DNA of 23,841 bases from Thecamonas trahens ATCC 50062 (taxonomy: Eukaryota > Protista > Apusomonadida). The notes below the pieces were generated by a model that did not search any database, had not been told where the DNA came from, and saw only the letters and a list, made by a program, of their open reading frames with translations. Shown piece after piece: positions 18,916 through 23,841 of this stretch; the first letter of the stretch is position 1, and every line of letters begins with the position of its first letter. Location: assembly GCF_000142905.1 (NCBI RefSeq), contig NW_013657666.1, positions 102,468 to 126,308 of the forward strand. The letters are read 5' to 3'. The position numbers were made by a program, and so were the translations under genes.

Positions 18916-20742
18916 TCAGCTCCAGTTTGCGTTCCAGTTGCTCCGCATCACCCGTGCTGCCAGCGCGCGCCACGCCGCTAGCCCGCGGCTGCCCTGCGGG
19001 CCCATGCAGCTGAGCTCAAGGCTCGTCAGCCGCCGCCCGATGCCCAGCACCATCCCGAGCTCGAGCTCGGAGAAGGCCTCGACATGGGTGAGGACCAGCC
19101 GGCGGAGCTGCGGCGCCACGCCCACCAGCCACGCCACCTCAAGCAGCGACTGGACGTAGGTGCAGTGCCTAAGCTCGACACTCACCAGCGCGTGCGGCGC
19201 GCAGTTCGAGTGCGAGAGCGCAAAGCCGTCGAGCTTGAGCTCGCGCAGCACAGGCAGGCCGTCGAGAACCAGCCCAAGTTTAAGCCCAACGCCCGGCCCG
19301 GCCAATAGGTTCGCATCGTACGTCGACAGGTCCGCCGGCTCGCGCCACACCGAGAGGTGCAGCCGTTCGAGGCCGGGCGCGTCGCGGACAATGTAGTCGA
19401 GGAGCTCGCGGATGGAAAAGCCTACCGGATGCCGGCCCATGTGGAACCGCTTGAGCGCAAGTGATCGCAGCTGATGCCGCGCCCCGAGGTTGGTCAGCAA
19501 GTGCTCCACAAAGCCGAACGAGTAGTCAAGCGCCACCGTGTGGAGCTTGGGCGGGAGCCGCGGCACCTTGCGCCAGTCAATCCATGGATCCGGATCAGTG
19601 CCCAGAAACCACACTGCTGAGACCACAAACTCTTCCAGCACTGGCATGGCGCCAAACAGGATGTTGACCTCCCTCTCCGTCAGCTGCCCAGCCGGCACCT
19701 CGAGCACGCGCAGCGCATCAAAGCTACTGCCCAGTCCCAGCTGCCGGCTCACCGGTGACAGCACGTCCGTCTGCCGCAGCCGCAGCACCTCGAGCGCCTC
19801 AAGCCCTGACAGAGCGTCCAGGTACGACCCATCATCGTCTCCGCCTCCACCGGTCAGCTGCCTACGATCGCCACTGTCGCCAAAGACCTTGCAAAAGGTG
19901 AGGACGAGCTCGCGGAGCGGAGGTCGCGCCGCCGCCAGGGCCCGCAGCGCAGCTACCGAGACCGAGAACAAGCCCTCAATGGCCTCGCCGAGGAACTCGT
20001 CGCCGAGCTCGAGCACCTCGAGCTTAGGACAGAGTCGCGGCGCGAGGGCCACCACCCAGTCGCCGCACTCAAACGCCTCGCGGCGGACGACCAGCCGACG
20101 CAGCCGCGGCGCCGACGCCAGGATGTCGAGGACAAAGAGCGCCTCGGGTGCCACCACGGCCCCGCGACCAAGCGCCTCAACCATCGCCTCGGCGAGCCGG
20201 CCGGGCCGCGGTGAGAGCTGTGATGCCTGCGACGACGGCTCTGAGCTCGCGCTTGGTGCGGCGCCGGCGGCGCTCGAGCTCGCACCTCCCGCCTCATCGG
20301 CCAGCACCAGCCGCGGCATTCGTCCCGGCCGCGGATACGCCACGTCCGGGAGGACAATTTCAGTGAGCGAGAGTGGAAGCTGCGGGCCGTAGGCGTTAAA
20401 TGCACGGAAGACCCGGGCGGCGGCGCCCATGTCAAGCTCGACAAGGCCGGTGAGGCGGCCGAGGGCAAAGGCGACACCAGCATCGGTCACGCTGCCGGCG
20501 ACACGGAGGATGCGGATTGCTGGATGGGCCGAGACGAGGCGGACGAGGACCGAGTCGTCGACCCGCGCCGCAAAGGGAACAAGGTCAAGGACCCGCCACA
20601 GCGAGCCGTCGTTGGCGAGGGCGTGCCACTTGCGCGCCACCTGCGCCGCACGCCCGAGCGTCGCCCGGTCCAGCAGCGAGAAGGCATACAGCACAAGCTC
20701 CACCGGTAGCGAGTCGAATGTCCGCGGCTCCTTGGGCATCAT
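18916..20742 (-). CDS. F-box/LRR-repeat (FBXL-type) protein
   Basis: F-box FDSLPVELVLYAFSLLDRATLGRAAQVARKWHALANDGSLWRVLDL followed by LRRs (CPKLEVLEL, PLRELVLTFC, LEALEVLRL, PGLERLHLS, PVLRELKL, PQLRRLVL). ATG at 20742 or 20739. Confidence 0.88.
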   Translation of the reverse strand: MMPKEPRTFDSLPVELVLYAFSLLDRATLGRAAQVARKWHALANDGSLWRVLDLVPFAARVDDSVLVRLVSAHPAIRILRVAGSVTDAGVAFALGRLTGLVELDMGAAARVFRAFNAYGPQLPLSLTEIVLPDVAYPRPGRMPRLVLADEAGGASSSAAGAAPSASSEPSSQASQLSPRPGRLAEAMVEALGRGAVVAPEALFVLDILASAPRLRRLVVRREAFECGDWVVALAPRLCPKLEVLELGDEFLGEAIEGLFSVSVAALRALAAARPPLRELVLTFCKVFGDSGDRRQLTGGGGDDDGSYLDALSGLEALEVLRLRQTDVLSPVSRQLGLGSSFDALRVLEVPAGQLTEREVNILFGAMPVLEEFVVSAVWFLGTDPDPWIDWRKVPRLPPKLHTVALDYSFGFVEHLLTNLGARHQLRSLALKRFHMGRHPVGFSIRELLDYIVRDAPGLERLHLSVWREPADLSTYDANLLAGPGVGLKLGLVLDGLPVLRELKLDGFALSHSNCAPHALVSVELRHCTYVQSLLEVAWLVGVAPQLRRLVLTHVEAFSELELGMVLGIGRRLTSLELSCMGPQGSRGLAAWRALAARVMRSNWNANWS

Positions 20743-21046
20743 ACGCCTGCCGCGACTTTCTCCACCCCGTGCCCGCGGGCCTGTCGGCAGCGGCGACGCC
20801 GGCGGCAGCGCCAGCGCATACGCCCGCACGGCCTGGCGGCGGCGGCGGCATCGGCGGCACCCCGGTCGAGCCCCGTCGTGCCGGTGGCGTGCTAGCCATT
20901 CCGGAGAGGGGCAAGAACGAGCTGAGCGAGGGAAGTGTACCTCGGCTCGTTCCCATCCCTGCCCCTGTCCTCTGCGCCGTCATGTCGCCCTCTCGGCCCA
21001 GACCACGACCTTTTTTCGGACAGCGACACGCCAGTGGGCTTCCCTT

Positions 21047-23746
21047 TTACAGCTTGGCGCGGGTCTTCTGGGTCGACGGCTGCGACATGCCCGACCAGGC
21101 GCCCGAGGCGTTACATGCTGCCACGGCGTATGTGTATATGGTGTCGGCCTTGAGGCCGGCGTCGTAAAACATGAGGCCCGGGCCCTCGTAGACGAGCTCA
21201 AACTGCGAGCCGGGCGTCGATCGATAGACCCGGTAGGCGGTGTACGGACCGTTGGCCGCCGGCGGCGACCATGTCACCACCAGCGCTGCAGTAAAGACGA
21301 GCGGGAAGGTGGGTGGGAGCGGCGCCTGCGGGCCGCGCGGTGCCGGCGCCGATCCGGCCCGCTGCGCCCCATGGACGGCGGCGGCATTGTACGTCCGCAG
21401 GTAGTAGCCGCTGCCAGCGCCCGGGCCACTGCCGGCGCCCAATGCCGCCGCAGGCCGCGCCGCGTGCAACGCGTGCGCCGTCCGCGACTGCTCCTGCGCC
21501 AGCAGAGCCTGCTCGGTCCGCAGTGCCGCCAGCTGCGTCTGCTGCGCCTGGAACGAGGCCGACAGCGAGGCCATCAGCGGATGGGTGTACGGCGAGCTCG
21601 GCGGGACCGACCGCCGCACGCTGCCCCCAACGCCTGCGCCCGCACTCGCGCCTGCATACGCCTCATACACGCTTGGTGCCGGTGCAGCCGCATTCGCAGA
21701 TGCAGGAACATGCACTGGGGTAGGAGAGGACGACGGTGACGGTGACGATCGCTTCAGCTCGGCCAGCTGTGACTCGAGCATCTCGATCCGCCGCGCCTGC
21801 TCCTGCAGCACCGACATGGTCTCATCGCCCACACCCGGACTTCCCTCGCGTTCGGCAATCGGCGACGACGCTTCGGCTTCCACCTCTCCTGCTGCTCCTG
21901 GCACCACTGCTGATACATGCGGCCGCTCGGGTGTTGCCTCTGGCGCCGCTGCCGGCGACGCACCGTTCGGCGCATCTGCGCGGCGCTGCTTGGTCCGCCG
22001 CCGCCGCCGCCGCGGTTGGACCGGCTGAACCGGCTGGACCGGCTGGGCCGGCATGGCCTGCCCAGACTTGGCCATGCTGGCACCAGCGTCGTGGAGCTGG
22101 GCCTCGCGGGCGGCGTCGACAAGGTCAAGGATGTCGTCCGAGTCGACGGGTGCGTGCTTGTCGACCATGGTCTCGAGCATGTTGCACAGATGATCGACGA
22201 TGATGCCGGCCTCATGGGCGGCGACGGCATCGGCGAGCGGGTCAGCGTCGAGGGCGTCGCTGAGGGTGACGCGCGCGAGGGCCAGCGCATCGGCGTGCGA
22301 CGCGAGCACATCGTAGTAGTACACACAGTAGTTGAGCGAGGTCGAGAGTCTGATTGGGTCAAGCGGCGAGAGCTCGCGGCGCGCGAGCTCGTAGCCGGCC
22401 TCGTACGCGGCGTGCGCGGCCTTGACAGCTGCGCGGTGCGGGCCCGAGTCCGGCGCGGTGCACTCGGCGAGGTACCGGTGCATGTCGCCGTCGAGTGTCC
22501 GGTAGAAGACTTTTGTCTCGGGTGCCGACGATGACGGAAGCAGGTGGTCCGAGATGAGCGAGAGCAGGATGCGCGAGATGGTGTCAAGCTCGGCGTTGAC
22601 CTTGTCGCGCGAGCTCGCGAGCCTGCTGGCGTACTCTGCGTCGCGTGGCGGGCCAGTGCCCCACTGCAGCGCCTCGATGTGGAACGTCAGCAGCTGCCAC
22701 ATTGAGCGGCGGACAGAGATCGAGTTCTTGAATGCGTACGCGAGGTAGGCGCGCTGGGTCTTGGACAGCTCGTCGCCCGAGCCGCGGGCGGCCATCTTGG
22801 CCGCCTCCTCGGCCTTGGCGTCACACACGGCCGCCTGATCCGCAAGCGTGCGCCATGTGATGACGTTGCCGTCGCCGTCGTCGCGTTGCAAGTCGCCAAG
22901 CTGTGAGTCGTAGCCGCCAGGCGCCGCCGACCGCAGCGCCGCCGGCGCGCCGGCCGCCGCGGGATGAGTCCCGTCGCCGGTCGGCCGGTCGTATGTCGCG
23001 GCCGCAGGCGCCAGCGGCGCGCCCACGGTGGGTGCCAGTCCAAGCGCACTCTCCCAGCCGGCAAGGATCTTGCGGAGGTGGTTGAGAATGATCGGCGTCT
23101 GCGGGTTGAGCGGCGACGAGAGCACGTTCTCGTGGTTCGCCCGCCACTCGGTCGCCGCATTCAGCGCCTTGACCGCCACATTGTACGCCTCCTTGGTCGA
23201 GCCGAGAATCTCCCAAAGGAAGACAGCGTAGTTGAGGGCGCAGCCGAGCGCTGCCGGCGAGGCCGGCGGCAGATCAAGGGCAAGGCCGTGGGCCTGCCGG
23301 TACGCCTCGTTGCCAGCCACGACATCGGCCTCGGCCGCATCGCCGACATGCACCTCGGAGAGGTAGCGGAACACGTCGCCGCGCAGCGTGGCATACGCCA
23401 CCTTGTCCTCCATGTCGGCCGAGCCCGGCTCGAGCACGTCGGTCACCAGCGCCAGCACGCCCTGCCCAGCCGCCTCCACCTCGGCCCGGATGTTGTCGCG
23501 GAGCTCGTACAGCGGCCGCAGCTCGTCCCCCGCCGCACCTCTTGCTGCGCTGCTCTCCGCCTGCTCTGCCGCCAGCAAGTACGCCGACCTTCGTGCCGCC
23601 AGCGCCTTCTTGGCCGCATGCGCGTACCGATACCGCGCCGCGTCCGACAGCCGTCCCTCGGCCGCCGCCGCATGCGCCAGCGGCGCCGCCTCGGCGTCCC
23701 ACGACGCAGCCTCATGCAGCCAGTCGCGGAGCGTCGGCACGTTCAT
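21047..23746 (-). CDS. Tandem 14-3-3-domain protein with disordered/coiled-coil region and C-terminal fibronectin type III domain
   Basis: Domain 1 KKALAARRSAY, KVAYATLRGDVFRYLSE, LPPASPAALGCALNYAVFLWEIL. Domain 2 YLAYAFKNSISVRRSMW, KVFYRTLDGDMHRYLAE, LSPLDPIRLSTSLNYCVYYYDVL. FN3 LVVTWSPP..YTAYRVYR..GLKADTIYTYAVAACNASGAWS. Confidence 0.9.
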   Translation of the reverse strand: MNVPTLRDWLHEAASWDAEAAPLAHAAAAEGRLSDAARYRYAHAAKKALAARRSAYLLAAEQAESSAARGAAGDELRPLYELRDNIRAEVEAAGQGVLALVTDVLEPGSADMEDKVAYATLRGDVFRYLSEVHVGDAAEADVVAGNEAYRQAHGLALDLPPASPAALGCALNYAVFLWEILGSTKEAYNVAVKALNAATEWRANHENVLSSPLNPQTPIILNHLRKILAGWESALGLAPTVGAPLAPAAATYDRPTGDGTHPAAAGAPAALRSAAPGGYDSQLGDLQRDDGDGNVITWRTLADQAAVCDAKAEEAAKMAARGSGDELSKTQRAYLAYAFKNSISVRRSMWQLLTFHIEALQWGTGPPRDAEYASRLASSRDKVNAELDTISRILLSLISDHLLPSSSAPETKVFYRTLDGDMHRYLAECTAPDSGPHRAAVKAAHAAYEAGYELARRELSPLDPIRLSTSLNYCVYYYDVLASHADALALARVTLSDALDADPLADAVAAHEAGIIVDHLCNMLETMVDKHAPVDSDDILDLVDAAREAQLHDAGASMAKSGQAMPAQPVQPVQPVQPRRRRRRTKQRRADAPNGASPAAAPEATPERPHVSAVVPGAAGEVEAEASSPIAEREGSPGVGDETMSVLQEQARRIEMLESQLAELKRSSPSPSSSPTPVHVPASANAAAPAPSVYEAYAGASAGAGVGGSVRRSVPPSSPYTHPLMASLSASFQAQQTQLAALRTEQALLAQEQSRTAHALHAARPAAALGAGSGPGAGSGYYLRTYNAAAVHGAQRAGSAPAPRGPQAPLPPTFPLVFTAALVVTWSPPAANGPYTAYRVYRSTPGSQFELVYEGPGLMFYDAGLKADTIYTYAVAACNASGAWSGMSQPSTQKTRAKL

Positions 23747-23801
23747 TGCCCTCCTCTCTATCTATATGTTGCCACCGTGGCGTTGCAGTGGAGGAGTGTC
23801 A

Positions 23802-23841
23802 CCCCCCCCCCCCCCCCCCCCCTCCCCCCTCCCCCCCTCCC
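23802..23841. repeat. Poly-C / C-rich tract at window end
   Basis: Directly visible. Confidence 0.85.

Follow-up and report, generated by a model that had tools for sequence, protein, structure and literature searches.

The stretch of DNA analyzed here, referred to as the window, comprises 23,841 nucleotides of the genome of the apusomonad Thecamonas trahens ATCC 50062 (contig C14, positions 102468 to 126308). An intact histone H3 gene on contig C57 of the assembly is an exact match to KNC51306.1/XP_013756228.1 of this strain. The gene that concerns us lies at window positions 21047 to 23746 on the minus strand and consists of 899 codons plus a stop codon in a single, uninterrupted exon, with an in-frame TAG six codons 5′ of the ATG. 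It encodes a protein in which two divergent 14-3-3 domains (D1 and D2) are joined by a linker and followed by a tail with a basic patch, two helices, and an FN3 domain. Entries in NCBI, UniRef, and EukProt hold exactly the same 899-amino-acid (aa) protein, and the public gene model is likewise a single exon; the protein is already public, and its tandem layout is rare and undescribed. Searches of the genome assembly (28.7 Mb, 131 contigs) recovered one canonical 14-3-3 gene besides the tandem gene, in several exons on contig C19. Its exons were read singly, and no joined sequence of them entered a search or the tree.

D1 (aa 6 to 235; 23042 to 23731, minus strand) is the more divergent copy and is supported by Pfam, phmmer, AlphaFold2, and VIA-align, and D2 (aa 294 to 531; 22154 to 22867, minus strand) by Pfam, phmmer, and VIA-align. 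Scanned separately, D1 matched the Pfam 14-3-3 model over aa 23 to 231 (E = 2.1e-29; 103.1 bits) and D2 over aa 301 to 517 (E = 6.9e-40; 137.4 bits), both above the curated PF00244 cut-off of 33.2 bits. In phmmer searches of the PDB, D1 matched 14-3-3 zeta (8e-22) and D2 matched rice GF14-C (1.4e-31). The linker between them (aa 236 to 293; 22868 to 23041, minus strand) stands out by its composition (25% Ala, 15% Gly, and 13% Pro over aa 236 to 290) and by its low predicted local distance difference test score (pLDDT) in AlphaFold2 models, 33 to 50 over most of its length and below 50 at aa 243 to 261. A previous reading of this DNA made without database searches (the sequence-only reading) had proposed two divergent 14-3-3 domains in one chain, joined by an Ala/Pro/Gly linker of about 60 aa, and had called for a Pfam scan; that scan recovered two 14-3-3 matches and one fn3 match, in agreement with the proposed layout.

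The 14-3-3 fold itself, on which that reading depended, is present in both AlphaFold2 domains (pLDDT >90). A model of aa 1 to 545, built from a 54-row alignment, had a mean pLDDT of 88 and a predicted template modeling score (pTM) of 0.58, with D1 and D2 mostly above 90, and the full-length model had a pLDDT of 72 and a pTM of 0.47 and was disordered outside the domains, helices, and strands. Foldseek matched solved 14-3-3 chains at template modeling scores of 0.86 to 0.90 (normalized to target length). VIA-align placed model residues 14 to 236 (D1) on 6bzd_B (Z = 27.1; root mean square deviation [rmsd], 1.7 Å; 218 residues) and residues 303 to 532 (D2) on 5lvz (Z = 27.5; rmsd, 1.7 Å; 221 residues). 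Overall, both domains superposed on solved 14-3-3 chains at Z values of ~27 and rmsd values of 1.4 to 1.7 Å, with helix A outside every superposition, and D1 and D2 are both predicted to adopt the nine-helix 14-3-3 fold.

Residue states were read from an alignment of D1 and D2 with 46 canonical 14-3-3 proteins, numbered on a zeta-like row. Among 51 positions conserved in at least 85% of the canonical proteins, 35 are kept in D1, 33 in D2, and 28 in both. The residues K49, R56, R127, and Y128, which bind phosphate (PMC9523730), have as equivalents K46, R53, R127, and Y128 in D1 and K340, R347, R424, and Y425 in D2; D124, E131, Y149, L172, N173, V176, and E89 are also common to both domains. N173 and N224 hold the peptide backbone (PMC9523730), and of these N173 is present and N224 is gone in both domains, being replaced by I227 in D1 and M523 in D2 at a position that is Asn in 48 of 53 other sequences. 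The alignment thus upholds two claims of the sequence-only reading, that the four phosphate ligands and the LN motif are retained in both domains and that the helix-9 Asn of LLRDNL is missing from both. Two further changes are identical in D1 and D2 (K120 to Thr and M121 to Leu), R60 is replaced by Leu in D1 and Gln in D2 and Y125 by Val and Met, and E87, E40, C94, L170, and S175 are changed in both. Altered in D2 alone are W228 (Met), E180 (Asp), and G169 (Ser). The sequence-only reading mentions none of the changes at K120, R60, and W228, nor those at R18 and D21 described below. Judged from these residues, the phosphate pockets are intact in both domains, and we read the pattern as one in which selection maintains the pockets, while the way in which peptides are recognized and the canonical interface have both been remodeled. 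An altered specificity, also part of the sequence-only reading, can fairly be inferred since peptide-contacting residues have changed.

The same losses might instead mark a pseudo-14-3-3, whose domains have given up phosphopeptide binding and act as a scaffold of helices or in a chaperone-like way. Changes at K120, R60, N224, and Y125 in both domains and at W228 in D2 would fit such a protein, as would the long branches of the two domains in our tree (2.67 for D1 and 1.61 for D2 versus a median of 0.71). However, the four phosphate ligands and L172/N173 have all been retained in D1 and D2 alike, whereas no more than 28 of the 51 conserved positions have. By our own rough arithmetic the chance of that survival is (28/51)^6, or ~0.03, and we regard a non-binding protein as improbable.

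How D1 and D2 are placed relative to each other is a separate question. The sequence-only reading saw them as an intramolecular pseudo-heterodimer. In the canonical form of such a dimer, the N-terminal helices would pack D1 and D2 into the usual W shape, held by the linker. The 14-3-3 dimer is stabilized by one to three salt bridges (PMC9523730). At the residue level, the salt bridges R18-E89 and D21-K85 are lost in this protein: R18 is Ser in D1 and Val in D2, D21 is Ala in both, and K85 is Asn in D1 and retained in D2. Y82 is Leu and Ser, and S58 is Ala and Met. With R18, D21, K85 (in D1), and Y82 changed, no canonical salt bridge can form between D1 and D2, although both domains retain E89, and L12-A13 (as LAD) and A16 are preserved in D2. 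In the model, DSSP assigns a single continuous helix in place of helices A and B (residues 6 to 30 and 298 to 321), and in all 50 VIA-align alignments listed, the matched part of the solved chain starts at residues 16 to 22, so that the dimerization helix A is off its canonical place in both model domains. No PDB chain covering both domains was found among the structural matches, the longest alignment of which had 247 columns. These features argue against the canonical dimer, whereas the length of the linker allows it; by an estimate from established dimer geometry, ~58 mostly disordered residues are enough to bridge the gap between helix 9 of one subunit and helix 1 of its partner. The pTM values also count in its favor. 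A pTM of 0.58 for aa 1 to 545 suggests only a moderately defined arrangement of D1 and D2, but by our estimate two freely hinged domains would yield ~0.44 for aa 1 to 545 and ~0.30 at full length, and the values obtained (0.58 and 0.47) lie above these and hint at a defined arrangement. Taken together, a W-shaped dimer within one chain is a tentative proposal that we consider rather unlikely.

The loss of the canonical interface residues and the non-canonical helix A of the model would be expected if D1 and D2 were instead independent, monomer-like readers, like beads on a string, with multivalency provided by oligomerizing C-terminal helices. Two conserved amphipathic helices with a heptad pattern are present in the tail (see below), and monomeric 14-3-3 forms are functional, with higher chaperone-like activity (PMC9523730). 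The pTM values, which hint at a fixed arrangement of some kind, speak against independent domains, and unpaired, exposed interface hydrophobics (W9 and L301) would presumably be unfavorable; we treat this arrangement, too, as doubtful.

Relatives of the protein were sought by an exhaustive HMMER search of 1.84 billion representatives, in which neither a full-length ortholog nor a fragment of D1 or D2 exceeding 40% identity turned up. Only C-terminal fragments of relatives were recovered. These are P0003 and P0152, which share a cluster and derive from two ENA samples, one of them a TARA Oceans metagenome. They align to aa 579 to 898, with the basic patch, both helices, RRSxPPS, and FN3 conserved, and P0003 matches fn3 at 27.1 bits. 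Scans of JGI metagenomes with the whole protein and with the C-terminal alignment (alignment A3) found no relative. A word-index protein search returned only the protein itself for the whole-length query and nothing at E <1e-10 for D2 alone; these blanks are uninformative, because even canonical 14-3-3 proteins were missed by the D2 query.

Several elements precede the FN3 domain in the tail (all on the minus strand). After helix 9 of D2, the full-length model has an extra acidic amphipathic helix (aa 536 to 556; 22079 to 22141), with mean pLDDT values of 82 (aa 531 to 540), 93 (aa 541 to 550), and 58 (aa 551 to 560), and in alignment A3 the relative also has an acidic stretch. Since the C-terminal tail of 14-3-3 proteins can be auto-inhibitory (PMC9523730), it is possible that this helix is its counterpart, a tail that occupies a groove. 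The basic patch PRRRRRRTKQRR (aa 578 to 589; 21980 to 22015) lies in a disordered stretch (pLDDT, ~35), and the relative carries KRKRKGKGKRRRRHSKK where it aligns. The first coiled-coil-like segment (aa 640 to 667; 21746 to 21829) is a helix in the AlphaFold2 model (pLDDT, 82 to 93), with hydrophobic residues at 0.63 of heptad a/d positions versus 0.15 elsewhere, and the relative is alike. The second (aa 723 to 762; 21461 to 21580) is also a predicted helix (pLDDT, 63 to 89), with an a/d occupancy of 0.64 versus 0.07 elsewhere, and its start, MASLSASFQAQQxQLAALRxEQA, does not vary among the three sequences of alignment A3. For both helices, then, a/d occupancy is 62 to 64% versus 7 to 15% at other positions, with the same pattern in the relative.

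Between the two helices lies an RRSVPPS motif (aa 711 to 717; 21596 to 21616, minus strand), which aligns with RRSPPS in the relative; a further RRSPS is found close to the latter. The segment is disordered in the full-length model (pLDDT, ~30), and no docking of it was seen in that model, in which AlphaFold2 does not represent phosphate. That the motif is a phospho-site or an internal ligand is speculation.

The tail ends in FN3 with a conserved lead-in (aa 798 to 898; 21053 to 21355, minus strand), recognized by Pfam. The fn3 model (PF00041) matched aa 821 to 892 at 28.0 to 28.4 bits (E = 1.9e-6; cut-off, 25), and six beta strands, where a complete FN3 sandwich has seven, are predicted at aa 823 to 887 with a pLDDT of 41 to 70, which is low because the alignment is shallow. 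Feature matches for the tail in the ESM Atlas were all to FN3 (score, 0.85) and serve as a lead only, and the whole protein gave no usable feature match there. The basic patch, the two coiled-coil-like segments, and the C-terminal FN3 of the sequence-only reading have thus each been located, the last with a score of 28 bits, where 25 is the cut-off. No paralog of the C-terminal module was found in the genome. The only other stretch in the genome that resembles this FN3 (L020; C25:361621-361929) lies inside an open frame of 1832 codons and shares 38% identity (E = 3e-10).

Compared with the relative, FN3 has a pN of 0.114 and a pS of 0.756 (saturated), and the C-terminal module is under strong purifying selection in this marine-metagenome relative. 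The open reading frame (ORF) of the relative at L007 is open to the 5′ end of its contig and begins with DLCDRVRSL, which resembles the unusual HLCNMLETM of D2 helix 9. The Cys that takes the place of R222 does not occur in the list of residues for 53 further sequences. These nine residues are suggestive of an upstream 14-3-3 domain in the relative as well. No match to the neighboring gene on the relative's contig was found in the window.

We also considered whether the gene model could be an artefact, such that neighboring genes (two or three of them) or a retained intron had been merged into a single ORF in DNA that is rich in GC and therefore poor in stop codons. A GC content of 69% makes long open frames easy, and many spurious ORFs overlap the locus. 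GC content at third codon positions (GC3) is 0.83 to 0.90 across D1, the linker, and D2, and only aa 571 to 690 are lower, at 0.61 to 0.72, a dip that would speak for an artefact. The linker on its own has a coding-like GC3 of 0.83 to 0.87, however, and D1 cannot end as a separate protein, because it has no stop codon of its own. Three introns of the canonical 14-3-3 gene, with a GTACG(T/C) donor, pyrimidine-rich bodies, and a CAG acceptor, served as a reference for splice signals. GTACG occurs at five places in the 899-aa ORF, all within the Pfam-aligned domains and none in the linker or the C-terminal half, and neither the donor consensus nor a pyrimidine tract was found in the linker or in the low-GC3 stretch of aa 571 to 690. 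The ORF of the relative, too, continues without a break from residues resembling helix 9 to the C-terminal module, and the public annotation gives the same protein. An artefact of this kind is therefore very improbable.

D1 and D2 share 33% identity, and either is 24 to 37% identical to canonical proteins. In a quick maximum-likelihood tree they were sisters with 96 support in the Shimodaira-Hasegawa-like approximate likelihood ratio test. Long-branch attraction is possible, since both branches are long, but the shared K120T and M121L changes independently favor duplication, within the gene, of a domain that had diverged beforehand. Residue and tree evidence thus fits an origin of D1 and D2 by internal duplication of an already divergent 14-3-3.

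The tandem arrangement is rare but not unique, and the uniqueness implied by the sequence-only reading was overstated. A 471-aa protein, P0016, also has two 14-3-3 domains in one uninterrupted ORF and was found on five metagenome contigs from three sources. In the two contigs whose DNA was read (L021:3001-4416 and L022:2488-3903; both 31% GC), its gene adjoins two Ser/Thr kinase genes and a Bax1-I gene, and the host is possibly an AT-rich protist or a giant virus. P0011 (500 aa) is a relative of P0016, and in the tree a-domains pair with a-domains and b-domains with b-domains across the two proteins, which indicates that their tandem is old and conserved. Like the Thecamonas protein, P0011 and P0016 keep both domains in one frame. 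In contrast, they form a separate clade inside the canonical 14-3-3 proteins, their domains are near canonical (484 to 494 bits for both together, with LIRDNLTLW retained), their linker is ~25 to 35 residues, and they have no C-terminal extension or FN3. By its place in the tree, their tandem arose independently of that in Thecamonas. A literature search yielded no paper on the Thecamonas protein, on P0011/P0016, or on the two-domain predictions given next, the matches being to tandem binding sites or tagged constructs only.

Other two-domain predictions come from Branchiostoma lanceolatum (CAH1271196.1), the dinoflagellate Polarella glacialis (CAE8620535.1), and Turnera subulata (KAJ4838433.1). 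Their domains are canonical, and they have no coiled coil or FN3; the halves of the Branchiostoma protein, the only one of these compared half against half, are 59% identical. These entries may be merged tandem gene models, a likely cause given that the genomes are intron rich, and those from Polarella could alternatively be real poly-domain proteins. The Polarella protein P0029 (763 aa) has two canonical 14-3-3 domains; its cluster mate P0151 (CAE8615325.1; 1104 aa) was left out of the scan.

In comparison with canonical 14-3-3 proteins (human zeta, yeast Bmh1, and rice GF14-C; PF00244), the Thecamonas protein shares the nine-helix fold (Z, ~27), the phosphate pocket, and L172/N173 in both domains, and it has two grooves per functional unit. 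It differs in that both grooves lie in one chain instead of in a dimer of ~250-aa subunits, in its identity of 24 to 37%, in the replacement of K120, R60, N224, R18, and D21 in both domains, and in its added tail of ~370 aa. SMG5, SMG6, and SMG7 carry a single 14-3-3-like phospho-binding fold inside larger multidomain proteins, fused to helical repeats. Their 14-3-3-like domains are beyond PF00244-level similarity, and they are compared with the Thecamonas protein by description only.

Around the gene, a poly-G/GA run lies ~50 nucleotides 5′ of the start codon and is followed by a block of N's, possibly an assembly gap (window positions 23780 to 23841; L006:4300-4900). The next gene downstream, ~220 nucleotides away on the same strand (18916 to 20829, minus strand), encodes an F-box and LRR protein (F-box-like, E = 7e-13), and the other neighbors are a PSI-repeat RasGAP receptor, a patatin lipase, and a CUE protein, a set of genes in keeping with a protist of this kind. 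Two histone loci were also noted elsewhere in the genome. On C14, ~304 kb past the end of the window (L018:1284-2460), ORFs with H2A and H2B histone folds lack an in-frame start Met by the fold, and these genes probably have introns or short 5′ exons. On C57, a 255-aa ORF (L012:405-1172) in which a long basic N-terminal stretch precedes a divergent H3 fold adjoins a canonical H3 (L012:1474-1887) and looks like a CenH3-like variant.

The reading that we prefer, to which we assign a probability of roughly 0.55, is that the Thecamonas protein is a single-chain, bivalent phospho-Ser/Thr reader with an altered motif preference and a conserved coiled-coil/FN3 tail for oligomerization or targeting. 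An already divergent 14-3-3 would have been duplicated internally, with the phosphate pocket and the L172/N173 groove floor retained in both copies. Because these are retained, each domain most likely still docks a phospho-Ser/Thr segment, and one polypeptide could then clamp two phospho-sites, a role usually filled by the 14-3-3 dimer. The loss of K120, R60, and N224 would act on recognition of the peptide backbone and hence has probably altered motif preference or affinity, and the covalent linker of ~58 residues would substitute for the lost dimer salt bridges in holding the grooves together. The conserved tail, with its basic patch, two helices, and FN3, most likely oligomerizes the protein or tethers it to a particular partner or cellular site. 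Several observations weigh against this reading. With N224, K120, and R60 lost from both domains and W228 from D2, peptide binding might be weakened or lost altogether; neither domain has R18 or D21, and K85 and Y82 are at most partly retained; in the AlphaFold2 model, helices A and B run together in D1 and in D2, and helix A never enters the superpositions; and, as no full-length ortholog turned up among the 1.84 billion representatives, the evidence that the tandem part is conserved consists of nine residues at the end of a contig.

A more far-reaching version of the single-chain reader, which we put forward as conjecture with the odds against it, is that duplication replaced dimerization in a marine apusomonad 14-3-3, that the two non-equivalent grooves, with intact phosphate pockets and rewired peptide contacts, read different phospho-motifs, and that the coiled-coil/FN3 tail places the reader at a specific site, with RRSxPPS or the helix at aa 536 to 556 perhaps serving as a built-in ligand under the control of phosphorylation.

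The function of 14-3-3 proteins is usually explained by the dimer, in which a pair of grooves holds two phospho-sites or links two partners and whose formation is itself regulated. Thecamonas is a close outgroup of animals and fungi and is used for tracing the origins of adhesion and signaling. For now, the practical weight of its tandem 14-3-3 is limited, as the binding is predicted and so is the gene product. The second, independent tandem family from metagenomes suggests that the same solution has originated repeatedly. A natural protein with two divergent grooves and without the canonical salt bridges would provide a ready-made test of what dimerization contributes, and the Thecamonas protein would illustrate how the specificities of two grooves can drift apart when the halves no longer stand in for each other.

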